NCBI RefSeq assembly: GCF_020745735.1
Contig: NC_083409.1
Span: 16,540,789 to 16,604,788, forward strand
DNA length: 64,000 nt
From: Hemiscyllium ocellatum
Taxonomy: Eukaryota
Reading direction: 5' to 3'
The notes below the pieces were generated by a model. The model saw nothing but the letters and a program-made list of their open reading frames with translations, was not told the origin of the DNA and made no database searches. This document shows positions 7,567 to 47,800 of the stretch, piece by piece (positions within the stretch are counted from its first letter, which is position 1; each line of letters starts with the position of its first letter). A program made the translations under genes and the position numbers.

Positions 7567-7617
7567 GTGATTGAGCAGAGTTAAAGCTGGGGGAGGTGGG
7601 AGCTCGGTGTCTCACTG

Positions 7618-7649
<32 letters not shown>

Positions 7650-7839
7650 AGGTCAGTGAGATCAGAGACTGGGACAGGGAGCCAGAGCTCACATCAAACT
7701 CTGCCCCGTGTCCGTCACACTGAGACTGGCAGGAGGCTACTCACTGATTTCACTCCATGCTGCAGGAATGGGACCACAGGCTGCAAATGGACAGAGCTCC
7801 TCCACACGGTGAGTAAAACTGACTGACTTATATCTTGCT
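7567..7839 (-). promoter_or_regulatory. Conserved post-J intronic block, copy A (candidate intronic enhancer; lone heptamer plus (CAG)10)
   Basis: About 97% identical to 41632-41896, while the adjacent 130 bp is only about 70% identical. Runx site ACCACA 7773-7778; heptamer CACTGTG 7613-7619. Confidence 0.6.
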
Positions 7840-8022
7840 TCTTAAAGGGGGCAATGGAACTGAAGTGGTACGGTTGGACAACTGTTAGACACAGTGCTCC
7901 TTAATCAACCATTTCGTTCACTGCAGCTCCCCACTAACACCTTCAACAAATCAGTAACTGTATTTTAGAAAGTGTGTTTCAGTATTGAAAGGGTTAATAA
8001 CAGAGGATTGAGGTTTACTTAC

Positions 8023-8057
8023 TCAGTCTGAGCTTGGTTCCTTTACCGAACGTGTCC
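8023..8057 (-). CDS. IGKJ: Ig kappa-type J segment, cluster A ([12 protein letters not shown])
   Basis: FGxG motif; 35 nt; intact phase-1 donor A|GTAAGT at 8022-8017. Confidence 0.96.
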
Positions 8058-8096
8058 CACAGTGAGAGTTCCCAGTGCAGAGGCTGTACAAAAACC
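8058..8096 (+). other. J recombination signal sequence, 23-bp spacer, perfect consensus
   Basis: CACAGTG (8058-8064), 23 nt, ACAAAAACC (8088-8096), abutting the J coding end at 8057. Confidence 0.97.
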
Positions 8097-8528
8097 TCTG
8101 CTCTCTGCTTCCCCCCCATCACTCTCAACCTCTCCCTGTCTCCCAGTCTCTCGTTCACTCTCAACTTCTTTCTGCCCCTCTCTGTCTCTCCCTCATTCAT
8201 GTGTCTTTCTGTCTCCATCTCTCTCTGTGTCCAGCTGGGCTTGGGAGCTTTGTGAAATTTATTTTTCGATATTAAATCTTGCAGCTGTTCTTCACGCGTG
8301 GTCATGGAGTGTCAGAGGGAAACTTGAGGCCTTCAGTGAGCGGTGGACACCACAGGGACTGGAGTGTGTCATGGACAGTTACAATCCCAGCATGGGGTAA
8401 TTTGTTCAGTTTCATTTGTATCTAATTGTGGATGTGTCAGTTCAGGCTGTGGGACTGTGTGTCCATTATTATACATTTTATATAACTGATTGATGTGTCA
8501 GTGCATGAGGTGGTGCTGTGTGTCTTGA

Positions 8529-8556
8529 GGTTTTGGTATGGCTCTGTATCACTGTG
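8529..8556 (-). other. V recombination signal sequence, 12-bp spacer
   Basis: Minus strand CACAGTG (8556-8550), 12 nt, ACCAAAACC (8537-8529; one mismatch to ACAAAAACC). A V-12/J-23 arrangement is the kappa configuration. Confidence 0.96.
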
Positions 8557-8861
8557 TTGAGCGGAGCTGCTATACCAGCTGTTCTGACAGTAATAGTCAG
8601 CGACATCCTCACTCTGAACGTTGCTGATTGTCAGGGTGTAACTGGTCCCTGATCCACTGCCGGTGAATCGCTCGGAGACTCCTGTGAATCGAGATGTTGC
8701 AGCATAGATCAGGAGAGAGGGTTTCTGACCTTCTCGCTGCTGGTACCAACTGAGGTAGCTGCTAATGTCTTGACTGGCCGTACAGGTGATGGTTGCAGTC
8801 TGGCCCAGTTCCACTGACAGCACCGGGGGAGACTGGGTCATGATAATCTCCCCATTGATAC
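8557..8861 (-). CDS. IGKV: Ig kappa-type V exon, cluster A, open and unrearranged
   Basis: Acceptor CCCCTCAG|GT. Translation [102 protein letters not shown] has the conserved Cys, WYQQ, GSGSG and DYYC motifs and no stops; it ends at a 12-RSS. Confidence 0.97.
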
Positions 8862-9047
8862 CTGAGGGGTCAGAGAGAAACACAGTGAAGTCAGAACTGT
8901 CACAGAAAGAGCCGGTCAAATGAGAGATTGTTGGAGACACTGAGCTTTCCTCTGGTTTCAGCATTTTCCCTTCAATCACAAGTCAGTGGAATTGGAGTGA
9001 AATGGAGAGCAGCGAAAGATTCAAGGTGGAAGGAGAGAGATTTGTAC

Positions 9048-9096
9048 CTGCGACACAGAATGCCAGGGGCCAGATCAGCTGGATGTGTGTAATCAT
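9048..9096 (-). CDS. IGKV: Ig kappa-type light chain cluster A, leader exon (MITHIQLIWPLAFCVA-G)
   Basis: ATG at 9096-9094; 49-nt exon encoding a hydrophobic signal peptide; phase-1 donor G|GTACAA at 9047; 186-bp intron to the V exon. Confidence 0.95.
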
Positions 9097-9253
9097 GGTG
9101 TGTGCTCCTGTCCCTGTGCCTGGTTCCTGATAAACTCTCCCTTCACTGGGCTCTGCTTTATAAAGCTGCAGCCTGTGAGAGTCTGACTGGGTGTTCCTCA
9201 GTATGTAAATGGCATCAGGCAGAGAGAGCCACGTCAGCCCCTCACACTTCCTC
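9097..9253 (-). promoter_or_regulatory. V promoter, cluster A
   Basis: On the sense strand: PU-box GAGGAAGTG (9253-9245), TGACGTGG (9236-9229), octamer variant ATTTACAT (9210-9203) and TTTATAAA (9164-9157), upstream of the leader ATG. Confidence 0.85.
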
Positions 9254-9254
9254 T

Positions 9255-9482
9255 TCTCTCTCTCCCTCTCTCTCTCTCATCCTTTCTTTTCTTTCTCCCT
9301 TTTCCCTTTTTTCTCTTTCTCACCCTTCTCTTGTATACGTTCTTGTTATTCGTTGACTTTCTCTCTCTTTTTCTATTTCCGTCTCCAACTCTGTCCTCTC
9401 CCAATTATATAACTACTTATATCTTTCCTTTTTTCCATGTATGTTTGACATTCTGTTTATCTCCCTCCCTTCTGTTTTGGTT

Positions 9483-9527
<45 letters not shown>

Positions 9528-9790
9528 GATCATTCATTCTTCTCCTTCACTTATATTACTACCTAATTCCTCACTCATTCTCTCCTTATACCCTCAATCT
9601 CTAATTGCCTCACTCTCTCTTTGTCTGTTTCCCTCCCTCCAGTCACTCTCTAGCAGGCATTATTCCAGGACATTGGAACAGTGAGTCCTGGGGCAGCAAT
9701 TAAATGCCTCGCCCTCTCTCACTCAATCTCACAATGTACACTTGCTCTCTGTCTCTGTCTGTGTGTGTCTTCTGTGTCTCTCTCAATCAA
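9255..9790 (+). repeat. CT-rich low-complexity tract with (TC)19 at 9485-9522; related tracts at 10270-10580 and GA-rich 39230-39780, 40721-40752
   Basis: Direct reading of polypyrimidine/polypurine composition. Confidence 0.9.
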
Positions 9791-9927
9791 AAGTTCAATG
9801 ACATGAACAGCATTTAACAAGTCTCTACTGATCATCAATGATCTAGCAACATCAATCCCAGCTTGGCATTGAGGGAGAGGATCAGCCATGGTCATATTGA
9901 ATGGCAGAACAGACTCACAGGGCCAAT

Positions 9928-9969
9928 CCCTAACCCTAACCCTAACCCTAACCCTAAACCTAACCCTAC
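9928..9969 (+). repeat. Short interstitial telomeric sequence, (CCCTAA)5 plus two degenerate units
   Basis: Five perfect CCCTAA units at 9928-9957, inside a CR1 3' tail; absent from the arm-B counterpart near 40070-40090. Confidence 0.9.
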
Positions 9970-10537
9970 TCCTGCTCTCTATTTCTATCTTTGTATGTCT
10001 GTGTAATCTCCAATCTCTGTCCCTGGATATTGATCCCTCTATTCATGGAAAAAGTTGCCTTCCTGTCCACTCTATCCCTGCCTCTCATAATCTTTTTGCC
10101 CTTCAGCAGGTTCCCTCTCAACCTTCACTGCTCCAAGAGAAACAATCCCAAACTTTCCAATCCTTCCTCATAGCTCACACCCTCCAGGCCAGGCAGCATC
10201 CTGGGAAATCTTTGCACCATCTCGAGTACAGTCATATCTTTCTCATAATATGGTGACCAGAACATCTCTGCACGTCTGTCTCTCTCTTTCACTGGATTGC
10301 CTCTACTCTTTGTCTCACACCTACTCTGTCTGTCTGTCTCTCTCTCTGTCCCCTCTCTCTCAGTCACACTGTCTCATACTCTATCTCGCTCTATCTCTAT
10401 TCTTCAACTCCACCATCTCTACCTCTCTCTACCTCTCTCTCTCCCCCCGCTTTTACTCATCTTACACTGCCTGAGATTCTTTATCCTGCTCTCTCTCACT
10501 TTCACACCCTGCCCTTCTATGTCTCTCTCGTCAACAT

Positions 10538-10573
<36 letters not shown>

Positions 10574-11049
10574 GCACACTCTCTGCCTTTCCAACAAGGT
10601 CCCAAGTGGTAAAAGTTAAATACAGGTTATATCTCCTCCAAATCTAATGGATGTTAACCCTTGACACCAGGAGTATGTCTACTCCTGGAATAAAGGCCCA
10701 TTTCCCACATTGACCAGGGTTTGGCCTCTCTCAGGAAGACGGTCAGATTCTTGTCAAATGAAGGGCAATTCTGTGCTGTTGGCCCATTCTTCCTGGGGAC
10801 TGGTTTGGACACAAATCTCATTCCATGAAAGCCCAGCAGAGGGAGGAGATCCTCAGGCCATCAGTATGACCTGGAGGGATAGGACAGGATCTGACCCATT
10901 GACCCATCCTATCCATTCACAACATGTTCCAATCCTTTCCCCTCACCTTTCCCTTCCATGGTCAAGCTCCAGTTTTATTGGTATGAGGATTGGACCATCA
11001 CACAGTTACTACAGAAAGGAAATGAGCCCCACACTCACTACAGTATCCA

Positions 11050-11405
11050 TGTCCCACTGGACTGTCCAGTGGAGACCAGTAAGCATGGAATTCATTCCCA
11101 CAGAACTCTCCAGTAGAGACCATTAAACATAGGCATCTTTGCCGCTGGAGCCTCCAATGGAGACCAGTAAATATGGGTCTATTTCCCACTGAATACTCGA
11201 GCAGAGCCTAGTTAACATGGACCTTATTCCTACTGGGCCCTCCAATAGAAACCAGGAGAGAAAGGCCTCCATTTCTTTGAACTCTCCAGTGCAGACCAGT
11301 AAATATAGACGAGCTTCAAACTGGCTCCTCCAATACAGACCAGTAAAGATGTGACTCTTTGTGAATGGATCCTCCAATACAGACCAGTAAACAAGGATCT
11401 CATTG
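11050..11405 (+). repeat. 44-bp tandem array (about 8 diverged units); continues at 12490-12620
   Basis: A GAGACCAGTAAA-like motif recurs at 11072, 11116, 11160, 11204, 11248, 11292, 11336 and 11380. Confidence 0.85.
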
Positions 11406-11714
11406 CAAGATTGAACTTCGGAATGAGGAGCAGGAATAGGTAATCAAACCCGTTTCCTATTTAACATGATCATGGCTGAACTTAACCTCCTCTCCACTTT
11501 CCAGACGGCTACCTATTGCCCTCTATCCTGCTTTTCATCAGAAAGATATCTGTTTCTTTCTTGAATCTGTTGATTGATTCTGCCTCCACTGTGCTTGAGG
11601 AAGGGGGTGGGGAGGGGGGGGGGTAGTGGGGAGGGGGGGTGGAGATGATGGTGCGCACTGACATCCACAGATTCGCAACCTTCTGCGAGAAGTAGTTGGA
11701 ATGGAACAGATTCC

Positions 11715-12055
11715 ATACAGTATGAAACCAGGCCATTCAGCCCAATAAGTCCACACCAACCCTTCAAAGAGCATTCCACCCAGAGCCATTCTGGAACCTT
11801 TTCCCTGTAACCCTATATTTCCCATGACTAATGAATCTAACCTACACTTTCCTGGACACTATGGGTAAATTAGCATGGCCAATCCTCTGAACGTGTACAT
11901 CATTAGACTGTGGGAGGAAATCAGAGCACACAGATGAAGCTCACACAGACAGGGGGAGAATGTGCAAACTCCATGCAGTTGCCTGAGGGTGGAGTCGAAC
12001 CTGGGGCCCTGGCACTGTGAGGCAGCAGTGCTCACCACTGCACCACTCTGTCACC
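11715..12055 (-). mobile_element. HE1-like V-SINE, older copy
   Basis: Diverged head, V-domain and tail. Confidence 0.75.
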
Positions 12056-13568
12056 TGTAGTTTCTCCTCATCTCAGTTTTAAACATACCTCCTCTCACTC
12101 TATGTCTATGACCTCTTGTTCGAGACTGGCCCACAAGAGAGTACATCTGTTCAATGCTTGCCCTATCAATCTCCTTTAGCATCTTATATACTTCACTCAG
12201 ATCTCCCCTTCATACAACTGAATTCCAGTGAGTACAAGCCCTAGCTATTCAACCATTCCTCATATGGCAGCCCTTTCATCCGGGGAATCAGTCTGGTGAA
12301 CATCCTCTGAACTGAATCCAGTGCCACCATATCCTTCACCAAGTAAGGAGACCACAACTGGACACAATGCTTCAGATGTGGTCTCACCAATGCCTAATAG
12401 AATTGTCACAATATTTCTTTATTTCTGTAATTCAGTCCTTTTATAATAAATACCAAGATTCCAATTGCTGCAAGAAATGCCAACATTCCAATTCCATGGG
12501 ACTCAATTGGAACCTCCAACAGAGATCAGGAAACATGGGCCTCCATCCCACTGGAATGTCCAATGGACAGCAATAAGCCTGAGCTTCTTTCCCACTGGAC
12601 CCTCCAGTATTGGAGCTTCAAACCCCACTTCCTCTCCATCACCTAGGTCTCTTATTTCAATCTCCACTACATTGTTTGTCTCTGCACTACATCAGCCCCT
12701 TGACCACAGAAACTCTTATTCCTGCTCATCCCACCTCCAAACTCCAACATTCTGATGTCCTCTCTCAGCTTACTCCATCTGTGCTCCATAAATTCCAAAT
12801 TGTCTGGAATGAAATGGCCCCTTCCCTGTCTCATACCAAGGAGGAGATTGACAGATTTGATTTTAGTAATTAGTTGAAAGTTTACGGAGAGTGGGTGTGG
12901 TCAGAATTGGTCAAATTGATGACGGCTCCTGCAGTTGAATATCCTGCTGGCAGGCTCCAGCCTTTTACACACAGAATGGAGAAGTGTGTATTGTAGGCAT
13001 ATATTGTAAAGTTCCATAGAATTAAACCTCAGCATCAAATGTCCCTCAGGAGGGGAGAGGGAATGTTCAGGGTCCTGAGCTCCATTTCCCAGCCCAGGCA
13101 GTTTGCCTCCCAATGAATGAATGAGATGCCAGCTTGGAGCCCAGGTTAGGGACAGTCTCTGCTGTGGACCCAAGTCAACAAGAGGCAGCTGGAGATCGAG
13201 CTGAAAGGAAAGATTTGCTGGGTTATGGGGAGAGAGGGGGCAGTGGGAATAATTGGATCACTCACAGACACCACAGGTGGGGGGGGGGGGGTGCAGGTTT
13301 AGGACTAAATAGAGAAGGAACTTCTTCACCCAGAGGGTGGTGAATCTATGGAATTCCCTGCCCAGCGAAGTCGTTGAGGTTTCCTCAGTAAATGTTTTTA
13401 AAGCTGATTTAGGTAATTTTTTGAACAGTAAATGAATCAAGGGTTTTGGTGAAAAGGTGGATAAGGGGGAGCTGATGCCATGAAAAGATCAGCCATGATC
13501 TTACTGAATGGCAGAGCAGCCCAAGAGGCCAGAGAGCCTGCTCCTGCTCCTGGTTTTAATGTTCTTAT

Positions 13569-13801
13569 GTGCTGTCAGATTCCAGGGAGTGCAGACAGTT
13601 CACAGTTTTCTCCCGTCTCAGTAACAAATGTGCAGCTGCTCCGAGCTCCTTCTTTCACTTCCTCACTTGGTGAAGTTTCAACCTTGCGATCTGACAGCCT
13701 TTGCAGTTATTTTTTACACTGGGGCTTTCTGCTGTGGTCAGAATCTCTAATAATAAGTGTCCAATCAGTGACAATCACAGCAGCTAAGAGCAGTCAGGAC
13801 T
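13569..13801 (-). promoter_or_regulatory. Candidate upstream B-lineage enhancer, copy A
   Basis: EICE GGAAGTGAAA (13662-13653), E-box CAGCTG 13633-13638, Runx TGTGGT 13733-13738. It differs from the B copy at 15 of 233 nt. Confidence 0.55.
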
Positions 13802-13814
13802 GAGTAGCCAGGCT

Positions 13815-14500
13815 CACTGGGAAACACATTGGGAAGATCAAAGCCATCCCCTTCAGGTCCCGGTACAACCTCCATCCCTCTCCCTGAGCACTGTCTGCTG
13901 CTCAACCAGACTCTTTACAAAAACAGAATACCTCAGCAGGTCTGGCAGCATCTGGGGAAAGAAATCAGAGTTAACCTTTCAGGTCGAGTGACCCTTCCTC
14001 AGAACAGTTCTGAGAAGGTTCACGTCCCAAAATTTTAACTCTGCTTTCTCTCCACAGATGGTGCCAGACCTGCCGAGCTTTTCCAGCAATTTCTGTTTTT
14101 GTTCCTCATTTGCAGCATCTGCAGCTTTTTCGGCTTTTATTTCATACCAGATTCCTTAAAATCTTGGCCTCATCTTTGAGGCTGATCTGAGCCCCAAATC
14201 CTCCACAGCACAGAGATCACTCACTGAAAGTCCCACTCGTTGCTTTGGGACTCCAAACATGACCATTCTAATGTTGTCTTGGGCCACATCACAGCCACTG
14301 CCCTCTGTAAACTTCAGCTCACACCAAAACTCTGCTGCCCGAATCCGAACTCGCAACAAATCCCATCCCCATCCCCCACTGTCCTCACTGAGCGACATTG
14401 GCTCCCGGTCCAATAACACCTCGATTTTCAAATTCTCGTCCTTGTTCTGAAGTCCCTCCCTGTCCATCGACCCTCCCCATCTCTGTAACCTCCTCCTAGC
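13815..14500 (+). mobile_element. L2-clade LINE fragment; mirror at 34470-34900 (-); further L2 pieces at about 12620-12830, 36660-37080 and 55640-55900
   Basis: ATTGGGAAGATCAAAGCCAT..CCATCCCTCTCCCTG..AACCAGACT signature of the L2 3' region. Confidence 0.55.
13915..14140. mobile_element. Palindromic (tail-to-tail) PLE-derived element, arm-A specific
   Basis: Inverted arms centred on CTCAGAAC-A-GTTCTGAG (13998-14014) with decayed CTGAGGA..GAAA cores; empty site near 34800-34830 in arm B. Confidence 0.7.
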
Positions 14501-14749
14501 TGCCTCACTCAGTGTGGTCAGCAATCTTGGATATATGGCTCTCTATTCCTTCATCCAAGTCATTCAGAAATATTATGAAATGCTAAAGTCCCAGGACGGA
14601 TCCCTGGGCACACCACTATTCACCTCTTGCTCATTTGAGGACACACACATTATTCCCTCACTCTGTCTCCTATCTCCAAACTAATTCCTAACCCAAGGCA
14701 AATGTTTTTTCTCTTATTCAATATGGTTCCACGTTGATGAACAATCTCT

Positions 14750-17200
14750 CAAACAGTGAAACTCGGAGCAGGAATAGGCCATTCAGCCCTTCGAGCCTGT
14801 TCTGCCATTCAATATGATCATGGCTGATCATCCAACTCAGTTGCCTGTTCCTGCTTCATCCCCATAACCTTTGATCCCTTTCATTCTAAGAACTGTATTG
14901 TGCCCTTTCTGGAAAACATTCAGTGGTTTGAGCTGAACTGCTTTCAGTGACAGAAACGTCTACAGGCTTCCTGTAGAATGAAAATATTTCTCTCCATCTC
15001 AGCTCTAAATGTCCTTTCCCGTATCCTTAAACTTTAATCCTTGATTCTGGACTCCTTCGTCATCAGGAACATCCTGTCTTGTCCTGTTAGGATTCTAGAG
15101 TTTTCAGTGTGACTCCCCATAATCTTCTAACCTCCAGTGAATATAATCCTAACTGATCCAGTTTCTCATCAGATCTAAGTCTAATTGCTGTCATCCCAGG
15201 AGTCAGCCTGGTAAACCTTCGCTGCCCTCCCTCCACAGCCAGAACATCTTTCCTCAGATAAGTAGACCAAAACTGCACACAATACAATCGTAAAATCGCA
15301 CAGTACAGAAGAGGCCCTTCGACCCATTGTACCTGTACCATCCAAACTACAGTAAACCTGCATTCATCCAAATTTCCAACACAAGGCCCATAGCTTTAAA
15401 TGTTATGATATTTCAAGGGTTAATCCAAGTACTTTTAAAAGTCCTCCTCAACTACCAGCCCAGACAATGCAAACCAGACCCCCACCACCCTCTGGGTGAA
15501 AATCTCCTCTTCAAATCCCCTATGAAGCTCCTGTCTTTCACAGTGAATGTGTGCCAACTCCGAAGAAGAGGAACAACTGCTTTCTATTCATTGTGTCCAT
15601 TCCCCTCATAGCCGTTTACACCTCTATCAGGTCCTCTCAACCTTCTCTGCTTCAAAGAAAACAACCCGAGTTTATCCAGCCTCTCTTCATCGCTGAAATG
15701 CTTCATCCCAAGCAACATCCTGGTGACTATTCTCTGCACCCCCTCCAATACAATCCCATCCTTCCGATTGCGTGGTGACCAGAACTGCACACAGTACTCC
15801 AGCTGTGGCCTAACAAAAATTCTGAATAGCTCCAACATATCTTCCCTGGTCTTCTCATCTATACCTGAAATGATAAAGGCAAGTGTCCCATATGATTTCA
15901 TCAATACTTTATTCACCTGTTACATTGTCCAAAGTTCATCACCTCACATTTATCAGGGGTAAGTTCCATCTGACTCTGATCTGCCCATCTGACCAATCCA
16001 GTTAGATCCTCGTGTCACCCAAGACCTTCTTCCTCATTGTCAACCATCTGCCAAACCTCGTGTCATCCAAAAACTCAGTCATCATCCACTCACCCCCACC
16101 CCTCACCTCTCACATTCTCATCTTCATTGTTTCAATACATCCTGAACAATAAGGGACCCAGCACTGATCCCTGTGGTATCCCACTGCACACTGGGCCCAG
16201 TCACATAAACAAATTTCTGCCTCCACCCTCTGTCTCCTGTCACTGAACCAGTTTTGGTTTGAATATTCAGGAGTGGACTCACTAAGGCCCCATACAATTA
16301 CAGCAAGACATCCCTGTTCCTGTACGCAAATTCTCTCACTATAAAGGTAACATATCATTTACCTTCTGCACTGCCTGCTGCACCTACACGCTGACTTTCA
16401 GTGACTGGTATACACGGACACAGGCATCTCTGCATCTTCTTCACTGCTCCCCCTCCCACCCAGCTTTGTGTCATCTGCAAATTGGAGATATTACTCTTAA
16501 GTTCCCTCATCTAAACCATGAACAAATATGAACATTACTGACATGAATAGAGAAGTGGTTGGCAGGCTGGAAACAAAGAGTAAAAAAAACAGACCTTTTT
16601 CTGAAAAGGTCTGTTTTTTTTTTACTCTTTGTTTCCAGCCTGCCAACCACTTCTCTATCCATGTCAGTACACTGCCCCAGTCCATTGAGTCTTACTTTTA
16701 CTCGCTAATTTCTACTGTGGGACTGTTTAAAAGCCTTCTGAAGGTTCCAGATAAACCACATCCGTTGGCTCCCCCTTGTCAAATCTGCTCATTCCATCCT
16801 CGAACAATTCCAGTCAATTTGTTCTGCATGATTTCCCTTTCCACAAACCATGCTGACTCTGTCTAATCCTATCACTGTCTTCCACGTGCCCAGTGATTAA
16901 ATCTTTCACAACGAACTTGACTATTTTTCCCAATACCAATGCCAGGCTGACTGGTCCAGGTTGCCCACTTTTCTCTCTCCCTCCCATTTTAAACAGTGAT
17001 GTTACATTCGCAACTCTCCAGTCACTGGGAAAGTTCCAGAATCAATAGAATCTTGAACACCAATGTTCCCAAAATTTTTGGGCAATTCCTGAAGTAATCT
17101 GAAATGTAGGTTATTGGTCCCTGCGGATTTATCAAACTTTAATCCCATAAACTTTCCAAAACCATTTCCCGAATAAAACTAATTTTCTTCAGTTCTGCCC
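14750..17200 (-). mobile_element. Stacked 5'-truncated CR1 fragments
   Basis: LEYCVQFWSP motifs, RT pieces and 3' tails. Confidence 0.8.
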
Positions 17201-22080: not shown

Positions 22081-22109
22081 TTCTCTTCATAGTCATAGAG
22101 TCATAAAGC

Positions 22110-23550: not shown

Positions 23551-23689
23551 CCTTTCATTGTGTATATCCCTCCCTTATTAGACCTCCCAAACTGGATCAC
23601 CTTACACTTGTCAGGATTAAATTCCAGCTGCCATTGTTCTGCCCAGTTACCAGCTGATCAATATCAGACTGTAGCCTGAGACCCAGTAA

Positions 23690-31880: not shown

Positions 31881-31919
31881 GTTTGTAATTTTCTTTGTCC
31901 CTTGTTCTTGGACCTGAGA

Positions 31920-34920: not shown

Positions 34921-35153
34921 AGTCCTGACTGCTCTTAGCTGCTGTGATTGTCACTGATTAGACACTTATTATTAGAGATTCTGACCACAGCAGAAAGCCC
35001 CAGTGTAAAAAATAGTTGCAAAGGCTGTCAGAGCACAAGGTTGAAAATTCACCAAAAGAGGAAGTGAAAGAAGGAGCTCGGAGCAGCTGGGTGTTTGTTA
35101 CTGAGATGGGAGAAAACTGTGAACTGTCTGCTCTCCCTGGAACCTGACAGCAC
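34921..35153 (+). promoter_or_regulatory. Candidate upstream B-lineage enhancer, copy B
   Basis: AAAAGAGGAAGTGAAAG with EICE core 35060-35069, CAGCTG 35084-35089, Runx ACCACA 34984-34989. Confidence 0.55.
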
Positions 35154-37114
35154 AGGAGGCTGGTTCTGGGATTTTTCTTTTCAGAAACAGCACAGTGATG
35201 GAAAAAGTGTCAGTCACTCTCTCACAAACACACACGCCTGCACTTCGAGATTAGAAACAGAATCCAGCAGCAGCTCTGTCTCCAAGCTGTGAAACCTGCA
35301 CAGAATTGTTCCCTCATTCAGTTTTTAACTGGCAGGATAGACCAAGCAGGGGAAGCAACACAGTGGTGTGTACAGTCAGAAGGGAGTTGCCCTGGGAGTC
35401 CTCACCATTAACTATGGAACCCATGAAGCCTCATGACAGCAGGTCAAACATGGGGAAGGAAACCTCCTGCTGATTACCACATAGCACCGCCCTCCACTCC
35501 AACCTCAACTGAACAGTCAGTCCTCCTCCATGTTTGACAACACTTGGAGGGAGCACTGAGGGTGGGAATGATGCAGGATATACCGTGAGTAAGGGACTTC
35601 AAAGTCCACCATCAAAAGCTGCTCAGAAGCATCACTACTGAGCAAGCTGGTCAGGTTCCACCTGATTCAGCTGCTCGACTGGACCTGGGGCAGGTGGTGA
35701 GGGAACCAACAAGAGGGAACAACATACTCACTATCACCCTCACCAACCTGCCTGCTGCTGGTGTATCTGTCCATGACAGTATCAGTAAGGGTGACCACCG
35801 CACAGTCCGTGTGGAGACAAAATCCCATCTTCACATTTAAGTTACCTTACATTTTGTTGGGCAAGAGATTCGGGATGTCAGGAAGGACTTTGTTTTGAAC
35901 AGCAATTGGTAATAAATTGGAAATTAGTGCCATTCAGGTGAGGCAGGTGAAGACACTCAGTGATTGCAATGGCAGATTGGATGGGCTCTTGATGGAAATA
36001 AACCTGCAAGGCTCTGGGGGTCGAGTAGGGGAGGGGGTGGGACTGACTGGATTGCTCCATGAAATGACAGCATTTACCTAACAGGCTGAATGTTCTCCCC
36101 CTGTGCTGGAAATAGATCTCACTCAATGAGGGGTTCACAATTAGAGAGTTTGGATGCAGTAAATACAGGACAAATTGTTTCTCCAGGCAGGAGGGTCAGT
36201 AACCAGAGGGCACACATTTCAGAAAGGGTCTGAAGAACAAGAGAGAAGATAGGAACATTTTTATCCAGCGAGTTTATGATGTCTGTCTGCAAGGTGAGTG
36301 GGAGTGGATTCAACAGCAACTTTCAAAAGGGCCTTTGGAGAAATAGCTGTAAAGGAAACAATTGCAGGGTTATACAGGAAGGGCTGGGGAAATGGGACTC
36401 ATTGGACTAATTTGTCTAACAGTCACAATAGGCCCAATGACCTCTGTCTGTGCTGTATAAGAACTTACACACACTTAGTCTCACCTTTACACAAAGACTG
36501 GGAGAAACAGACAATCCAGTTTACAGAAGAATGCTTTCTCAAACACTCTTGACAACTCAGGAAACAGGCCCAGACTAGATTCACTAGAGTAAGTCAGCAA
36601 ATCAATGACAAGGGAACAGTAAACCAAAAGCAATGGGACTGAACAATATATTCAGTAACACAACAATTGAGAGGAGGAGGAGGGATGAAGGGCAGGAGGT
36701 CAGAGAGCACGCTGTAGGGGCCTGAAGGCTCTGCTGTCAATGGTGGGATGGAGGAAGCAGCAATGGGCAGGAGACTAGAGACAGAAGATGGAAAGGGGAG
36801 GGAGGGAAAGTGAGTCTGCAGCAGGACACAGATTGAGGGAGGAGGGAGGCCATGGAGGCAATTGGTTGGCAGTGAGCTCATTCTTGAACGACTTCAGATG
36901 TCAGACAAGGAAGGGACCACTCCATATCAGACAAGTTGGGGTTTATGGAATGTGACTTCAGGAAGCCGGGAGAGGACATTGGAATCAATAGTTAGGACAA
37001 GCAGGAATTAGTGTTTCTGTGGCCAGGGGACTGAAGTCGTGCAGAGACAGACAGTGTTGTTGAGACTGAAATAAGGGACCTTCATGATGGAGTGGATTTG
37101 GGGTTTGCAGCTCA

Positions 37115-38760
37115 AGTACTGGACAGTCCAGTGGGAAGGAGGCCCATGTTTACTGGTCTCTCCTGAAGCATCCAGTGAGAAGGAGGTCCATGTTTATTGG
37201 TGTCTGTTGGAGGTTCCAGTGGGACGGAGGTCCATGTTTACTGGTTCTATGGGAAGGTGGCTCATGTATACATCATCATAGAGTCATAGAGGTTTACAGC
37301 ATGGCATCAGGCCCTTCAGCCCAACTCATCCATGCTTACCAAGTTTCCAAAACTGAACAAATCCCATTTGCCTGTGTTTGGCCCAAATCTCTCTGAATCC
37401 TTCCTATCCATGTTGCTGTAAAAATCTCCTTGAAATGTAGTAACTGTACTCCCCTCTACCACTTCCTCTGGCAGCTCATTACACATACACACCAACCTCT
37501 GTGTGAAAAGGTTGTCTCTCAGTTTCCTTTTAATCCTTTCCCCCCTCAACTTAAACCTATTCCTTCTAGTACTGGATTCTCCTACCCTGGGGAAAAGACT
37601 TTGGCTATTTACCTTATCTATGACCCTCATGATTCTATAAACCTATATAAGGTCACCCCTCAATCTCCTGCATTCCCTGGAAAAAACATCTTGGCATATC
37701 CATCCTCGCCTTATAATTCAAACCCTCCAATCTTGGTAACATCCCTGTTAATCTTTCTTTTATTCAAACCAGCGTAATGACTTCCTTCCTATAGCAGGGT
37801 GAGCATAAATGTACACAGTGACCAAATGTGGCCTTACCGATGCCTTGTACAGCTGTAACATGATGTCCCAGCTCCTGTACTCTCTGCTTTGACCAGTGAA
37901 GGTGCACGTGCCAAATACCTTCTTCACCACCCTGTCTACCTGTGACACCATTTTCCAGGAACTATGTACCTGTACCCCTCGGTCTCTCTGTTCAACAACA
38001 CTCCCCATGGCTCTACCATTAATTGTGTAATTCCTGCCCTGGTTTGCCTTACCAAAATGTAACTCCTTCCATTCATCAGAATTTCCATCTGGATTTGTTG
38101 ACCCACTGGCCCAGTTGATGAAGATGACATTGCACTCTTCGATAACCTTCTTCCCTGTCCACGATGCCAACAATTTTAATGTCAGCCACAAACTTCCTGA
38201 CCATTCCTGCTATTTTCTCTCCAAATTGTTCATATAAATGACGAACAACAGTGGATCCAGGATCGATTCTTGTGGCAGATGGCTGGTCACTGGCCTCCAG
38301 TCTGAAGAACAACCCTCTCTCACCAGCCTCTGCCTCCTATCATCAGGCCAATTTTATATCTAATTGGCTCACTCTCCTTGGATCCTATGTGATATAATCT
38401 TACTGAGCAATCTACCATGAGGAACCTTGTCTAAGGCCTTGCTAAAGTCCAAGTAGACAGAGTGTACTGCTCTACCTTTATCAAGGTTTGTGATTACTTC
38501 TTCAAAAACTCAAGTCATCTACTTGTCTGAATCGGAAAGTCCAATGAATAGGAGGCCCATGTTTACTGATCTCTCTTGGAGGATCAAATCAGAAGTAGGC
38601 CAATGTTTACTGGTCTCTGTTGGAGATTCCAGCAGGAAGGAGCTCATGTTTACTGGTCTCTTCTGGGAACTTCAGTGGGAAGGAGGCCCATGTCTCTCTA
38701 TCGATCAGCCTTGTGAACTAAATTCCATGTTTAGTGGACTCTGTTGGAGAGTCCAGTACG
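37115..38760 (-). repeat. 44-bp tandem array, arm-B copy, split by a CR1 insertion (37272-38510)
   Basis: CATGTTTACTGG-like motif at 37145, 37189, 37233 and at 38558, 38602, 38645, 38689. Confidence 0.8.
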
Positions 38761-40715
38761 TCATGAACACATGGTGGGTATGTGTTCAGTTCCTTTCTGT
38801 TGTAACAGTGTGATGCTCCAGCCCTCATCCCAGTCAAACAGCCTGATTCAGAGACTGATCATGGAAGGGGAAGGAAAGGGAAAAGGATTGGAACATGTTG
38901 TGGATGGACAGGATGGGTCACTGGGTCAGAAATTGTCCTGTCCCTCCAGCTCACACTGATGGCCTGAGGATCTCCTCTCTCTGCTGGGCCTTCGTGGAAT
39001 GAGGTTTGTGTCCAAACCAGTCCCCAGTGAGAATAGGGCAACAGAACAGAACTCCCCTTCATTTGACAAGAATCTGTCCATCGTCCTGAATGAGGTCAAA
39101 CCCTGGTCAATGTGAGAAATGGGGAGTTACTCCAGGAAAAGACATGCTTTTGGGTCAAGGGTTAACATCCATTAGTGGGGCAGAGCAGAGGGAGATTTAT
39201 CCTGAATTCAACTTTCACCACCTTGGACACTGTGAGAAAGATAGAGAAACAAGACAAAGAGAGAGGTAGATGCAAATTGTGTGTGTGATCGAGCGATAGA
39301 GGGAGGGGCATCTGAGACAGTGTGTGATATGTGAAGGGGCCAAGAGAGAGGTAGAGGGAGGTAGACGTGGTGTGATTGAGGGATAGAGAGAGAGAGAAAC
39401 AAGATGTGACTGATCGGGATGGATAGAGAAAAAGAGATAGGATGGGTGTGATACCAAGAGTGAAGGGAATCAAGAGAGAGTGGGTAGGGTTGAGTGTGAG
39501 AGAGAGAGACATGAGTATGGTAAGAGACAGAATGACAGAGATGGAGAGAGAGAGACTGTAGATTGGGGTGCAGAGAGGGAAGGAGAGACAGAGAGAGGAA
39601 TAGAGAGGGGCAATTAACATTTGGAGGTTTTCAATTGAAGCGAGCAATGGAGCGAGTGATGGTGAGAGAGAAAGATGCAGAAATAGAGATTATGAGACGG
39701 AGTGAGGAAGTGTAAGTTGGAGAGAGTGGCTTTGAGACAGAGTGAGAGAGAAAGAGAGAGAGAGACAGAGACAGAGGGACAAGTCCTGGTCACCACATTC
39801 TTGGAAGGATGTGATTGTACTTGAGGGGGTGCAGAGATTTACCAGGATGCTGCCTGGGATGGAGGGTCAGCTGTGGGGAAAGATTGGAATGGTTGGGGTT
39901 TTTTTCCATGCAGCAGTGAAGGCTGAGAGGGGACCTGATAGAGGGGGATAAGATTATTCAGGGCAGTGATAGGATGAGTAGGAAGGCACTTTTTACAAGA
40001 GTCAAGGACTCAATAACCAGGGACAGAGATTGAAGGAAAAATAGACATGGACACAAAGAAAGTGCTGCAGGAGTAGGCCATTCGGCCCTTTGAGACTGTT
40101 CTGTCATTCAGTATGATCATGGCTGATCCTCTCTCTTGAAGTCACCTTCCTACTTTCTCCCCATTCCCTTCATGCTGTTAAAATGCAAAACAAATATATC
40201 TCTCTCTTTCTCTAAAATATATTCAGTTCCTTGTCCTCCATAGCCTTCAGTGGAAGATAATTCCACAGATCGACCATCCTCTGAGTGAAGAAATGTTTCC
40301 TCATCTCAGTCTGAAATGGTCTTCCCCATATCCCCCTGAGACTGTCTCCCCGGTTCCAGACTCCCCAACCAGGGGAAACCTCCTCCCTGCCCAGCCCTGT
40401 TAGAATATTATACATTTCAATCAGATCCCCTCTTATCCTTCTGAGTCCAGGCCCAATCGAGTTGGAGATTGAGAGAAGGGTTAGGGAGAAATGTTTTCAC
40501 CCAGAGGGTGGTGGGAGTCTGGAACTCACTGCCTGAAAGGCTGGTTGAGTCACAAACTCTCATGACATTGGAGCAGTATTTAGATATTCCCTTGTGTTGC
40601 TGTAGCCTCCAGGGTAATGGGCCAAGAGCTGGAGGATCATCAGATCTTTGTTTACCAGCACAGACACAATGGGCCAAATGGCCTCATTCAGTGCTGTCCA
40701 CATCAATGATTCTCT

Positions 40716-40749
<34 letters not shown>

Positions 40750-40755
<6 letters not shown>

Positions 40756-40906
40756 GTGTGAGGGGCTGACGTGGCTCTCTCTGCCTGATGCCATTTACAT
40801 ACTGAGGAACACCCAGTCAGACTCTCACAGGCTGCAGCTTTATAAAGCAGAGCCCAGTGAAGGGAGAGTTTATCAGGAACCAGGCACAGGGACAGGAGCA
40901 CACACC
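40750..40906 (+). promoter_or_regulatory. V promoter, cluster B (identical to A over 157 bp)
   Basis: GAGGAAGTG 40750-40758, TGACGTGG 40767-40774, ATTTACAT 40793-40800, TTTATAAA 40839-40846, ATG 40907. Confidence 0.85.
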
Positions 40907-41460
40907 ATGATTTCACACATCCAGCTGATCTGGCCCCTGGCATTCTGTGTCGCAGGTACAAATCTCTCTCCTTCCACCTTGAATCTTTAGCTGCTCTCCA
41001 TTTCACTCCAATTCCACTGACTTGTGATTGAAGGGAAAATGCTGAAACCAGAGGAATGCTCAGTGTCTCCAACAATCTCTCATTTGACAGGCTCTTTCTG
41101 TGAAAGTTCTGACTTCACTGTGTTTCTCTCTGATCCCTCAGGTATCAGTGAGGACATCATCATGACCTAGTCTCCCCCACTGCTGTCAGTGGGACTGGGC
41201 CAGACTGCAACCATCACCTGTAGGGCCATTAGCAGCTACCTTGCTTGGTACCTCTAGCGAGAAGGTCAGAAACCCTCTCTCCTGATCTATGCTGCAGCAA
41301 CTCAACTCACAGGAATCTCCGAGTGATTCACCGGCAGTGGATCAGGGACCAGTTTCACCCTGACAATCAGCAACGTTCAGAATGAGGATGTCGCTGACTA
41401 TTACTGTCAGCAGCATTACAGCTGGCCTTACTTTCGGTAAAGGAACCAAGCTCAGACTGA
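40907..41460 (+). pseudogene. IGKV: Pre-joined (RSS-less) kappa-type L-VJ pseudogene, cluster B
   Basis: Leader 40907-40955 (MISHIQLIWPLAFCVAG), 186-bp intron, V from 41142. Stops: TAG 41168-70, TAG 41255-57, TGA 41324-26. A 9-bp CDR1 gap relative to A. V (..[10 protein letters not shown]) is fused directly to J ([10 protein letters not shown], 41430-41460) out of frame, and the J donor is GG instead of GT (41461-62). Confidence 0.95.
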
Positions 41461-41631
41461 GGAAGTAAACCTCAATCCTCTGTTATTAACCCTTTCAATC
41501 TCTAAACACAATTTATAAAACACAAATACTGAATTGTTGAAGTGTTGCAGTGAAGGAAATGTTTGATTGAGGAACACCGCGTCCCATACGGTGTACATCT
41601 GTATTTCGTTAGTCCTATAACCCCATTAAAC

Positions 41632-41896
41632 AGCAAGATATAAGTCAGTAAGTTTTACTCATCGTGTGGAGGAGCTCTGTCCATTTGCAGCCTGTGGTCC
41701 CATTCCTGCAGCATGGAGTGAATTCAATGAGTAGCCTCCTGCCAGTCTCAGTGTGACGGACACGGGCAGAGTTTATGTGAGTTCTGGCTCCCTGTCCCAG
41801 TCTCTGATCTCACTGACCTCAGCAGCAGCAGCAGCAGCAGCAGCACAGTGAGACACCGAGCTCCCACCTCCCCCAGCTTTAACTCTGCTCAATCAC
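41632..41896 (+). promoter_or_regulatory. Conserved post-J intronic block, copy B
   Basis: CATTTG/ATTTGCAG 41682-41690, Runx TGTGGT 41693-41698, ETS-like CATTCCTG 41701-41708, (CAG)8 41820-41843, CACAGTG 41844-41850. Confidence 0.6.
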
Positions 41897-44800
41897 ATAA
41901 TCACAGAATTGTCACATTGCACAAGGAGGCCATTCTGCCCATCCTGTCTGGACTGGCTCTCCGAATGAGCAATTCACTGAGTGTCATTCTCCTGCCTTCT
42001 CCCTGTCACCCTGAACATTGTTGCTTTTCAAATATCAGTCTCATTCCCTTCGGAATGTTTTAATTGAAGCTGCCTCCACCACACTCTCAGGCAGTGCATT
42101 CCACACCTTAACCACCCACTGGCCAAAATGTTGTTCCCCATCTCACTTTTGTGACTTTTCCCAATTGCCTTCAATCTGTGGTCTCTCGGTCTCAATCCTT
42201 TCTCTTGGGAACATTTTCTCCCTATTTACTGTATCCAGGCCCCTCCTGATTTTAATTCCTCCAACAAATCTCCTCTCAGCCTTCTCCAAAGAAGTCAGTC
42301 CCAAATTGTCCAAACTATCTTAATAACTGATGTTCCTCATCCCTGGAATGATCTTTGGGAATATTTTTGCCATTTCTACAAAATTTCACCTGCTTCCTGA
42401 ATGATTTACATTATCTATGTCCCTCATGATTTTATAAACCTCTATAAGGTCACTCCTCAGACTCTTACACTAGAGGGAAAAAAGTCTCAGCTTTTCCAGT
42501 CCCTCATAGTCATGGAGTCATACAGTGTGGAAACAGACATTTCAGTCCAACTTGCCTGTGTTAACCAGATATCCTAAATGACCTCATCCCATTTGCCAGC
42601 ATTTGGCTTACATCCCTCTAAACCCTTCCTATCCATGTTCCCATCCCAATGTGTTTTAAATGTTGTAATTTTATCCGCCTCCAACGCTTTCTCTAGCAGC
42701 TCGATCCAGACACACACCACCCTCTGTGTGACAGGTTACCACTCAGGTCCCTTTTGAATCTTTTGCCTCTCACCTTAAACCTATGCCCTCTTGTTTTGGA
42801 CTCCCGTTCCCAAGGAAAAGACCTTGGATATACACCTTGTCCATGCCCTTCATGATTTTCTGCACATCCATAAGGTCACCTCGAGGCCTTAGATGCTGCA
42901 GGGAAAATAGGCCCATTTCTTCAGCCTCTCCCGACAGCGGAAACTCTCCAATTCCTGGCCACATCCTTGTAAATCTTTTCCGCTGCCTTTTAAGTTTAAC
43001 AACATCCTTCCTATCTCAGGATGATCAGAATTGTTCACATTATTCCCAAAGTGGCCTCACCAACTGCTGTACCACTGCAACATCATGTCCCAACTCCTTT
43101 ACTCAATGCAGTGACCAATAAAAGTAAGCATACCCAACACCTTCTTCATCTCCCTGTCTACCTGTGACTCCACTGTCAAGGAATAATGCACCTGCACCTG
43201 CACCTTCACCACTCAGTCTCTTTGTTCAGCAACACTCCGCAGGGCCCTACCATTAACCGTAAAAGTCCTGCCTTGGTTTGGCTTTGAAAAGTACAGCACT
43301 CACATTTATCTGAATTAAACTCCATCTGCCATTCCTCAGCCCACTGGCCCAGTTGGTCAAGATCCCATTGTACTCTTAGACAGCCTTCTTCACTGGCCAC
43401 GATGCCACCTGAAAATTCACCTGAACAGACTCTCACAACTCTGGCCCCTCCCTGCCTGTTACACTGCTACTACCCCAGTCTATATTCAAAAATTAAAGAA
43501 CCATTTATAATGACTCTATCATGTTTGCAGATATCTGTAAATTCCTTGCATTTGTATTCCTCTGCATCTTTCCCATTGGGTGGTGACTTGTTGACTGTTC
43601 TGAGGATTCTGTGGTCCTTGGTGTTCCTCTCTGTTATTCCCTCCTGGCTCCCACAGCCCTGCCAAGTTAGTTTAAACCCTCACCAACTGCACTAGTAAAT
43701 CACCCCAAAGGAACTCAGTCCCAGCTCGGTTCAGGAACAACGCTGCCTGGTCTGTCCAGGTCCCATCTCCCCCAGACCCAGTCTCAAGGTCCCAAGAATC
43801 TAAAGTCCTCCAACTTGGATCGTCTTTCCAGCTTCACATTCACCTGTGTTATCCTCCTGTTCCTATTCTCACTTGGGTGGGGCACTGGGAGAAATCCGGA
43901 GATTCTAACTTTTGAGATCCCAGTGCTAATTCCCTCCAGAGCCCCCTAAATTCTGACTGCAGGACCACATCCCTTTTCTCCCTCTGTCACAGGGACCATT
44001 GTGGACCACGACTGCTGCCTCTTCCCCCTCTCCCCTCAGGGTGGTTTGCAGCCGCTCAGAGACATCCTTGACCCTGGCACCAGGGAGACAACACACCATC
44101 CTGGATTCCCATCTGCAACTGCAGAAACACCTATCGATTGCCCTCACTCTCGAATCTCCTCTCGCTCTCCCTCTTCCTTGTACCCCCTGTACAGCTGAGC
44201 CCCCCGTGGTGCCATGGGCTTGGCTCTGGCTGCTCTCCCCAGATGAACCATCATTCTCATCAGGATTCTGAACTGAATCCTGGTTGGAGAGTGCAATGCA
44301 CTCAGGGGATTCCACTACTAGCTGCCTGGTCCTTTTAGACTGTCTGCTGCTCCCCCATTCCCTCTCTCCCTGCATTCGCTGAAGCTGCAGAGTGACCACA
44401 TCTAGAAACGTGCTCTCCACAGAGCTCTCAGCCTCACGGACGCTCCGAACTGACACCAGCTGCTGCTCAAGCTCCGAAACCCGGAGTTCCAACTGCTGTC
44501 ACTGACCACACTTTCTGTTCTCATGGTATTCCAGGAGCTAGGAAGCATTCTGAAGTTCCCACCTAAATGCACACTCTCTTCACCCTTTGGTTGTCTCTTG
44601 GCAAAGTTCTGATGACAAACAGCTCCAGCAGGGCTCACAGTCCAGTGGGTTAAGTGTTCCAGGGTTTTGGGGAAACTCTCCAGAAGACTTTAAGAAATAG
44701 GAGCAGAAATCAGCCATTCAGCCCGTTGAATCTGCTCTGCCAGTTGATCTTGGCAGATATGCTTCTCACCCCCATTCTCTGCTTGATCCACAGGAACGTT

Positions 44801-47800
44801 CGATCCCCTTAACTATCACAAACTATCTACCTCTGTCTTAAATACACTCAGTGACTTGGCCTCCACTGCCCTCTGTAGCAATACATTCCACAGATTCACC
44901 ACCCTCTGGCTGAAGAAATTCCTCCTCATCTCAGCTCGAAAGGGCCAGCCCTTCATACTGAGGCTGTGCCTTGGTTACCGACTCTCTCCTGTTTTTGGAA
45001 ACATCTTTTTCACATCCACTCTATCCAGGTTGATCAGTATTCAGTAAATTTCAAAAAGATCCCTCCTCATCTTTCTAAAGTCCATTGAGTACAGACCCAG
45101 AGTCCTCAAGCACATCTGATACGATAAGTCCTTCATCACCAAGATCATTGTTGTAAACCCCTCCAATGCCAGCACATTGTTTCTTAGAATATGGGTCCGA
45201 AATCTGCTCACAATATTCCAAATGCAGTCTGACCAGAGCCTTACACTGCCTCAGCAGTACATCTCTGCTCTTGTATTCTGGCCCTATTGAAATGAATGCT
45301 ATCATTTCATTTGCCTTCCCAAGCACAAACTGGACCTGCCTGTTAACCTGAAGGGAAACCTGAATGAGGTTCGTGCTTTAGATTTCCAAAAGATTTTCTT
45401 ATTTAGAAAATAGTCTTTGCATCTCTTCTTCCTCCCAAAGTGCACACCTTCACACTGTAACACATTGTATTCTATCTGCCACTTCTTTGTCCACTCTCCC
45501 AGCCTATCCAGGAGCTTTTACATTCTTCCCACTTCCTCAACACTACCTGTCCCTCCACCTATCTCATGTCATCTGCAAACTTAGCAACAATGTCTTCACT
45601 TCCTCCATCCAGATTGTTAATGTATAACGTGAATAGTTAAGGTCCCAACATTGACCCCTACATGACTCTACCAGTCACCAACGGCCATTTTTCCTCACTC
45701 TCTGCTTTATGCCAACCTGCCAGTCCTTAGTCCATGCCAGTGCCTCGGCCCTCACACTGTATGCTCTTATCTAATGTCAAAGGCCTTCTAGAAATCCAAA
45801 TAGATTACTTCCTTTGACTCTCCTTTGTCTGACTGGCTCATTGCCTCCTCAAAGAATTCTAACAGATTTGCCAGGCATGACCTCCCCTTGATGAAGCCGT
45901 GTTGACTCAGCCCTAGTTTACAATTGCACCTCCAAATCCTCTGCAATTTCATCCTTAAATTGAAGTCTAAAACCTTACCAACAACTGAGTCCAGGCTAAC
46001 TGGCCTATAATTTCCCATCTTCTCCCTCCTCCCTCCCTTCTTAAACAGGGCTGTTATGTGAGCCACTTTCCAGTCCCTTGCCCCCATCAGATCCCTGCCC
46101 ACCACACTGTCATACCCTGACTCCATCGATTCCTGAAAGATCATCTCCAATACCTCCATAATTTACTCAGTGATCTCCTTCAGAACACACTCATGTAGTT
46201 CATCTAGTCTGGGTGAGTTATCCACATTCAACCTTTCAGCTTCGATTCAATTCCTCTGCTATTTCTTCACTTCCTATAATACTTTCTCCAGCCTCATTTT
46301 CCAATGTCTATTTTTGCCTTCCTCTTCCTTTTTATACATCTGATAAAACTCGTGCAATCTTCTTTTGTATTACCGGCTAACTTACCCCCACATTTCCCCT
46401 TCTCCACCTTTAATGCTTTTTTATTTATCCTCTCCAGGTTTTTAAAGGCTTCCTAACCCTCTGGCTTCCCACTTTTCTCTACCACATTGTGCATTTTTTT
46501 CTTTTGCTTTTATGCTGTCCGTGACTTCCCTCACCAGCCATGGTTGCCTTGTCCTCCCCTTAGTATGTTTCTTCTTTTTTCGGATGAATTCCTGCTCTGC
46601 TTCCTGAATTATGCCCAGAAACCCTGCTGTTTGCTGCCCCACCATCTTACCTGCTCGGCTCCCCTTCCAACCAACTCTGGTCAACTCCTTCCTCATGTCT
46701 TTGTTGTTCCCTTTACTCAACTGAAATACAGATCCATCTGATTGCAGCTTCTCCCTCTCAAACTACAGGGGGAATTCTATCATATTATGATCATTTTTCC
46801 AGAAGGATACTTTCACCTTCAGCTCATTAATCAAGTTTGCCTCATTCCACATCACTGAATCCAGAACTGCCTGTTCCATAATGGCTCAACCGCAAGCTGC
46901 TCCAAAACCGATCTTGTAGACATCCATGAAATCCTTTTCTTGAGACGTGCTACCCAGTCCACCTATCCATTGAGGTCTGCCCTGACATTTTGTATACGGC
47001 TTTTCTGTCTCCTGATTGATTTCCTTCTCCACACCCTGATTACTGCTTGGAGATCTGGACATAACTTGCATCAGATTCTTTATTTCTTGCGGTTCCTCAA
47101 CTCTACCCACACACATTCTACACCTTTTGACTCTATCTCACTTCTTGCTTTGATTTAATTTAATATCGTACTAACAAGGCAACTCTTCCCCCTCTGTCCA
47201 TCTGCCTGTTCTTTTGATGGGACATATATCCTTTGGTATTTAGTTCCCAGCCCGGATCCCCTTACAGCCATGTCTCTGTGATACCCACAACATCGTACCT
47301 GCCAGTTTCAATCTGCACTACCAGCTCATTGCGTATACTGTGTGCTTTTAAGTCCAACACCTTCAGTCCTGCATTGACTGCCCTCCTTCTCATCATTATC
47401 CTCTTATCTGCTGTGCTTGATGCTCGACTCTTGTTCCTTTCTGTACTCTCTCTCCTGGTATGCCTTCTAGAAACCGAATAGCCTCTCTTGAGCCCTCCTC
47501 CACTTTAACTAGTTTAAATTCCTTGGAAACTCAATTTACCTCGATTTATGGCATCACTTTGTCTGCCTTACTCGGAATGCTTCGTGCATTTAGATACAAA
47601 CCCTTTAAGTTTGTTCTATTGTTCGTTTTCCCTGCACTTTTATGGTTCCTTTAATATTCAAAAATTCTATCCCTTCCTTTTATTTTCTGGTAACAATCAA
47701 TCCCATCACTAACCAGCAATCCTACCTTCTCCTTTACCTTCCATTTTCTCATTTTCCATCCAACTGAACCAAATTCCTTTCTCTTTGGGTTGAGTTCAGG

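Follow-up and report, generated by a model that had tools for sequence, protein, structure and literature searches.

Two immunoglobulin (Ig) kappa clusters of the NS4/type III-like kind, one split and one with its variable (V) and joining (J) segments fused, lie in the 64,000-nucleotide (nt) stretch of Hemiscyllium ocellatum contig NC_083409.1 analysed here (the window). BLAST self-comparison showed that such a cluster occurs twice, as collinear copies in inverted orientation, at 1-15888 (arm A) and 47527-31993 (arm B); the two stand head to head, ~31.5 kb apart. The high-scoring segment pairs between them reach 2200 bits, in single blocks of up to 2 kb, far above chance. Most of the arm sequence is present just twice within the window, which marks it as a duplicated segment rather than common repeats that line up by chance. 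Six collinear blocks upstream and 8 kb of collinear sequence downstream are common to A and B; 5' of the promoter the arms align in patches, over ~3.0 kb out of 6.6 kb, at ~79%. The border of arm A at position 1 is the window edge rather than the end of homology, and the constant (C) exon of A lies outside the window.

1..15888, minus strand: arm A, split kappa cluster, taking in some of the J-C intron (1-8022), then J, spacer, V, leader and promoter, with 6.6 kb of flank beyond the promoter (from collinear inverted homology to 47527-31993)
31993..47527, plus strand: arm B, germline-joined kappa cluster, its J-C intron extending to a C exon at 51.4 kb (from collinear inverted homology to arm A)

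Arm A carries an unrearranged gene that, judged from its sequence, looks functional. The features were read as follows, RSS standing for recombination signal sequence and CDR for complementarity-determining region.

9203-9210, minus strand: octamer-like ATTTACAT (motif)
9157-9164, minus strand: TATA-like motif
9048..9096, minus strand: leader exon, ATG at 9096 (sequence reading)
8862..9047, minus strand: leader intron, 186 nt, GT..AG, equal in length to that of nurse shark NS4 (PMC2193156)
8557..8861, minus strand: V exon, open, V-set (Pfam V-set E=1.3e-16), with 30 nt after the Cys codon, the long CDR3-end type
8529..8556, minus strand: 12-RSS, CACAGTG, 12-nt spacer, ACCAAAACC (1 mismatch to consensus)
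8097..8528, minus strand: intervening DNA between the two RSS, 432 nt, without counterpart in B or elsewhere in the window
8058..8096, minus strand: 23-RSS, GGTTTTTGT, 23-nt spacer, CACTGTG (0 mismatches to consensus)
8023..8057, minus strand: J segment, FGKGTKLRL, with a GT donor at 8021-8022 (sequence reading)

Apart from these two signals of A, no good RSS match was found in the whole 64 kb. They have kappa polarity, the 12-RSS behind V and the 23-RSS before J, and the kappa loci of Chiloscyllium punctatum, sampled as seven contigs (L001-L007) of assembly GCA_003427335.1, are laid out alike. The FGXGT motif of J reads FGKGTKLRL in both A and B. Together with the split leader, the V-set exon and a C1-set exon (the last seen for B only), these are the features of a kappa V-J-C cluster. 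The best matches of the A V protein are C. punctatum V genes, at 89% identity; mouse V-kappa sequences share 55-61%. An initial annotation of the window had described an inverted duplication of a split arm A and a fused arm B with common promoter, leader and introns, and had put the distance between the V and J coding ends of A at 499 nt and the leader intron at 186 bp. The self-comparison and the anatomy confirm the duplication, and both lengths were recovered exactly.

In arm B, V runs directly into J.

40200..40724, plus strand: fragment resembling the 3' end of a long interspersed element (LINE), directly 5' of the B promoter; found also in L003 and L002 of C. punctatum but not in A or L004-6
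40793-40800, plus strand: octamer-like motif
40839-40846, plus strand: TATA-like motif
40907..40955, plus strand: leader exon, ATG at 40907 (sequence reading)
40956..41141, plus strand: leader intron, 186 nt, kept (sequence reading)
41142..41460, plus strand: fused VJ exon, V ending at 41429 and J beginning at 41430 (alignment to A)
41461..41462, plus strand: J splice donor, reading GG, not GT (sequence reading)
51409..51737, plus strand: C-kappa exon, C1-set (Pfam E=6e-21), open reading frame (ORF) open over 108 codons

No RSS was found at the V-J border of B, and a homologue of the DNA that separates V and J in A was found nowhere in the window. The V frame of B is interrupted by stops at 41168, 41255 and 41324, and CDR1 has suffered a 9-nt deletion, between 41228 and 41229. 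CDR3 comprises 25 nt, so that the J frame is one base off the V frame. The J-C intron spans ~9.9 kb and ends in TG at 51407-51408, the position where the C exon needs an AG acceptor; the splice phase of this exon was taken from the J-C splice in two cDNA-like proteins (P0056 and P0057). Both splice sites of the J-C intron look lost (donor GG, acceptor TG), yet the ORF of the C exon is still open. In frame, stops, donor and acceptor, B departs from what is expected of a functional joined light-chain gene such as nurse shark R4 or R18; it is a pseudogene.

The change from GT to GG at the J donor was also observed in C. punctatum L006 (L006:11226-11265 against window 41453-41466), reflecting either parallel loss or an exchanged patch. 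The 12-RSS of L006 is disturbed in nonamer and spacer. A protein search with the C exon returned only four matches, among them shark cDNA contamination filed under bacteria. Public databases assign three shark kappa cDNA-like entries, P0056, P0057 and P0020, to Aeromonas veronii and Salmonella enterica, evidently through contamination of bacterial assemblies.

To define the V-J junction, the V ends and J starts of A, B and the seven C. punctatum contigs were compared. All C. punctatum relatives sampled are split (7/7). Most V genes end 24 nt past the Cys codon, the heptamer being preceded by ...CCTTGA or ...CCTTGG; in A and L001 the V end differs and measures 30 nt. The V end of B follows the 24-nt type of L003 and L004 as far as ...GGCCTT, where the sequence passes into AC(T)TTCGG of J. 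This corresponds to a trimming of ~2 nt from V and ~4 nt from J, for which non-templated (N) or palindromic (P) nucleotides are not needed, the exact V/J division being ambiguous owing to a CTT microhomology. No indel is visible at the B junction relative to the split relatives. The deletion of ~505 nt thus ends ~2-5 nt from the heptamer border on either side, and both RSS are wholly gone; ends placed so close to both heptamer borders are the signature of a RAG coding joint. In B, V and J are contiguous with neither RSS nor spacer, the trimming is small and the introns are retained, as in a gene joined by RAG in the germline. B still has its 186-nt leader intron and its J-C intron of ~9.9 kb and so is not a retrocopy, which supports the earlier proposal that the join was made on DNA.

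The simplest reading of the CDR3 frame is that the joint would have been non-productive from the start. Because the V end of A is of the 30-nt type and that of B of the 24-nt type, A does not show the pre-join state of B; A is not the direct precursor of B. The ancestor common to B and its split relatives must itself have been split.

If A and B were simple sister arms, they should be closest relatives along their whole length and differ by a uniform amount. Identity between them is instead mosaic, and the Kimura two-parameter distance (K2P) along the arms ranges from ~0.015 to 0.26. The promoter, leader exon and whole leader intron (8862-9257) are 98.5% identical (K2P 0.015), and over 9257-8950, which covers upstream sequence, leader exon and the 5' part of the leader intron, 2 of 308 positions differ (99.4% identity). 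The V exons share 91% and the J segments 98%, and most of the J-C intron is 87-90% identical (K2P 0.11-0.15). Such a mosaic implies exchange or conversion between copies.

The upstream flanks point to different relatives. The flank of A is collinear with L006 over 7115-17550, at ~85% (5.9 kb), past the end of the A-B homology, compared with ~79% (3.0 kb) between A and B. The flank of B is collinear with L003, the LINE-like fragment at 40200-40724 included. A maximum likelihood tree of the proximal 1.7 kb upstream separated (B,L003) from (A,(L004,L005,L006)) with support of 100/100, and in the part homologous in all four sequences of the quartet, 47 informative sites favour the grouping of B with L003, against 6 and 6 for the two other splits. 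The A V exon groups with those of B, L001, L002, L003 and L007 and not with the divergent V exons of L004-6. In quartets the gene body is star-like. Over the first 930 nt after J, sisterhood of A and B is weak (87/92), and A is no closer to B than to L002. Beyond ~1 kb past J, A and B are 87-90% identical over 8 kb; L005 and L006 reach at most 76% identity to A. A is thus a chimera, in which an L006-type upstream flank is combined with B-related sequence in gene body and intron.

The homology between the arms falls into two tiers. The older tier, upstream, predates the split from the C. punctatum counterparts, and the younger comprises the promoter and the sequence downstream of it. The initial annotation had counted about 15 kb of collinear TE (transposable element) relics, which hold up as collinear but not as sequence of a single age. 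Its use of A and B as clean sister arms, serving as matched control and clock, is not supported, in view of the flank tree, the V-end types, the mosaic identity and the finding that over the 930 nt A is no closer to B than to L002. It had also proposed a phylogeny based on flanks; run with the C. punctatum clusters, this identified the split L003 as the nearest sampled relative of B. The placement of the join in the B lineage stands in so far as the join is specific to B among everything sampled and younger than the common ancestor with the split relatives; A as the sister arm, and a join after or around one duplication, are not supported. Arm-specific insertions, as annotated, do exist: three insertions of a short interspersed element (SINE) with short target-site duplications lie in the J-C intron of A (508-806, 2441-2768 and 4805-5146) and none in that of B. 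The flank clock is confounded by exchange between the copies.

Several further features of the aligned arms were observed. An upstream block (13568-13921, 34803-35154 and L006:3268-3615) is ~89-90% identical in all three pairs, in flanks that otherwise share 76-86%; it had been noted before as a possible enhancer. The V exons of C. punctatum L004, L005 and L006 have a divergent framework region 3 (FR3) with a 3-nt insertion and resemble the 'clade III' NS4 genes of nurse shark. A stretch of ~150 nt just 3' of J (7836-7990; 41472-41625) evolves fast, A and B sharing ~74-78%; 20 of its changes are B-derived and 13 A-derived, B has lost 12 nt by deletion, and several of the substitutions are in tandem. 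A footprint in B resembling somatic hypermutation, comprising the changes after J and tandem substitutions in V, was considered and rejected: the same stretch is fast in A, and the profile follows the constraint seen across the family.

The differences between A and B were polarised with the C. punctatum sequences, giving the following counts.

V exon: 269 sites, 11 B-derived, 8 A-derived
Neutral-looking intron: 441 sites, 15 B-derived, 16 A-derived
Conserved intronic element: 268 sites, 6 B-derived, 0 A-derived
Promoter, leader and leader intron: 396 sites, 4 B-derived, 5 A-derived

The V exon of B has accumulated changes about as fast as the intron, which fits a prolonged absence of constraint. 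In the promoter, leader and leader intron, 4 B-derived changes compare with ~13.5 expected at the intron rate (Poisson p=0.003), and this deficit is also significant against all other segments (Fisher p=0.0005). In a dead gene this block would not be expected to stay clean; patch conversion into B from A or from another live cluster would be the simplest explanation. In the conserved element, the 6:0 division of B- and A-derived changes gave p=0.03, also in line with relaxed constraint in B.

This element is non-coding, ~280 nt long, and lies in the J-C intron 200-500 nt 3' of J (7560..7835 in A, minus strand; ~41640-41910 in B, plus strand). It is 95-98% identical across A, B, L002 and L006 and 97.8% between A and B, more conserved than the V frameworks; we regard it as a candidate regulatory element of the J-C intron. 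Inside it, a (CAG)n run precedes a lone CACAGTG heptamer. The SINE family found inserted in A is ~300-315 nt long, with further copies at 1863-2046, 54011-55485 and 57056-57847, thus clustering again at 54-58 kb. A Pfam search of the large ORFs between and beside the arms gave nothing except decayed TE sequence.

We interpret the locus as two old paralogous clusters with a mosaic history, A split and B joined by RAG in the germline and non-productive, a reading to which we give a probability of roughly 0.78. The window holds two V-J-C clusters of the NS4/type III-like kappa kind, paralogues from an orectolobiform shark, placed head to head; their upstream flanks would belong to two cluster lineages that separated before each split from its C. 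punctatum counterpart. B would have been joined in the germline by V(D)J recombination of the RAG type, with excision of both RSS and the spacer of ~430 nt. It would have been non-productive at birth, and its decay may have come afterwards or already been under way at joining. Gene conversion between the inverted neighbours would account for the near-identical patch of promoter, leader and 5' intron. That such conversion continues today between the dead, joined B and the live, split A, sustained by their head-to-head placement, and explains the near-perfect promoter and leader of B, is a speculative extension that we regard as quite doubtful. If true, joined pseudogenes of sharks could exchange sequence with working genes, in a donor and acceptor relation like that of the chicken pseudo-V genes.

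Some points weigh against this interpretation. The germline status of the join rests on the assembly and on the nurse shark precedent, and a 1-nt indel after the join could explain the frame error of B. That the C exon lacks an AG acceptor was judged against cDNA-like proteins rather than genomic sequence. Orthology of L003 with B and of L006 with A is drawn from flanks of 1.6-10 kb, in an assembly that is fragmented, and a closer C. punctatum locus, possibly joined, may lie outside the sample. The clean promoter patch could also reflect residual selection or a mutational coldspot, the block being 92-97% conserved across the family.

Of the alternatives, the one that survives best, though we consider it unlikely, is that B was duplicated from, or converted by, a kappa cluster elsewhere that was already joined, so that the RAG event would be older than B. 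For R6 and R19 of nurse shark a common ancestor that was already joined is possible (PMC2193156), and patchy exchange between clusters is evident at A and B. This explanation has to contend with the split state of L003, the nearest sampled flank relative of B, and with a V end in B that fits its own flank lineage.

It is rather improbable that a single local inverted duplication of a whole split cluster, of ~16 kb or more, produced both arms and that B was joined later, leaving the arms as matched controls. The copies are adjacent and inverted, share the six collinear upstream blocks and the 8 kb downstream, and are weakly sister in the 930 nt proximal to J (87/92), all as such a duplication would leave them. 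The upstream tree and quartets, on the other hand, pair B with L003 and A with L004-6, the divergence is heterogeneous (K2P ~0.015 to 0.26), the V-end types differ, and the homology of A with L006 passes the A-B boundary and runs on to 17550.

We give very little credence to a somatic or assembly artefact, in which a lymphocyte rearrangement would have entered the consensus: a polyclonal minority of lymphocytes cannot dominate a consensus, the junction lies within unique flanks that continue on both sides, and in nurse shark joined NS4 genes were found as germline genes in erythrocyte DNA and across individuals (PMC2193156). An ordinary deletion of the V-J spacer, unrelated to RAG, could have used the CTT microhomology, but its ends would have to fall ~2-5 nt from both heptamer borders and remove both signals, which is very unlikely at random and makes this explanation barely credible.

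Germline-joined Ig genes of sharks are the main evidence that RAG acts in germ cells and reshapes antigen-receptor loci. Split and joined pairs, their dating and dead, out-of-frame joined genes are already known from the work of Lee et al. 2000 (PMC2193156), and a single locus is a further example rather than a new principle. The novelty here is modest: the two genes are seen head to head in their genomic context, the neighbour has a chimeric history, and there are signs that patches have been homogenised. The chromosome-level context adds long flanks, neighbouring clusters and counterparts in another species to what the phage clones of 2000 offered. A split paralogue next to a joined gene need not represent the state before the join, and dating a join from one neighbour can mislead because cluster families exchange sequence. 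Comparison of B with the still-split L003, which shares the TE insertion upstream of B, may bracket the join better, if the orthology holds.

The closest known system is the NS4 family of nurse shark, in which Lee, Fitch, Flajnik and Hsu (J Exp Med 2000, PMC2193156) described ~50 genes, ~10% of them germline-joined. From the nesting of joined among split genes they inferred five independent joins, and pairs of split and joined genes were dated to 0-49 million years (PMC2193156). The joined genes are R4, R7, R18, RE18, R6 and R19, with S31 and S10 as split relatives (PMC2193156). Their junctions show trimming and little N addition, and the promoters are kept (PMC2193156). The background given in the initial annotation, that cartilaginous fish, including the NS4 family, carry germline-joined Ig genes, is correct according to this study (PMC2193156). 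The H. ocellatum pair resembles NS4 in its V-12/J-23 polarity, its 186-nt leader intron, its V-J spacer of ~500 nt, the octamer promoter kept in joined genes and the complete excision of the RSS, and the B junction agrees with the low-N germline joints of that family. The span from leader to J is 1074 nt in A and 554 nt in B, as against 1078 and 550 bp in nurse shark NS4 (PMC2193156). Two of the joined nurse shark genes are pseudogenes, R6 heavily disrupted and R19 with stops and a 1-nt frame error in CDR3 (PMC2193156); R19, in which one nucleotide would have to be removed from CDR3 to restore the frame, thus matches the condition of B. An identity of B or A with clone R6 or R19 was rejected, their restriction maps showing no match: the EcoRI fragments are 2516 bp in B and 8958 bp in A against 2.6-2.8 kb, and the PstI span of B measures 874 bp and contains an internal site, where the R6 and R19 clones have 727-754 bp. 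The present case differs from NS4 in that the joined gene stands head to head with a split paralogue and more than 15 kb of flank is available, enough to reveal a mosaic history that was out of reach of phage clones of 2-5 kb. In the literature searched, no genome-scale account of the arrangement of shark light-chain clusters or of inverted split and joined pairs was found.

The joined light-chain loci of skate and sandbar shark and the VD- and VDJ-joined heavy-chain clusters of horned shark are likewise fused in the inherited genome (PMC2192082). There, whole isotypes or expressed genes are joined; B, by contrast, is one dead gene in the midst of split ones. The chicken pseudo-V genes, germline VD-fused, offer another parallel, as fused, non-functional V copies close to a functional gene and with signs of sequence exchange; the difference is that no sign of somatic donation from B to A was seen, and the patch exchange may have run in either direction. 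Finally, the pair recalls large inverted repeats (palindromes), in which one sub-block of the inverted copies, themselves tens of kb apart, is far more similar than the rest. Here only ~0.3-0.4 kb is near-identical and the remainder has diverged by 10-25%, akin to a palindrome in which patch conversion has been sporadic at most.

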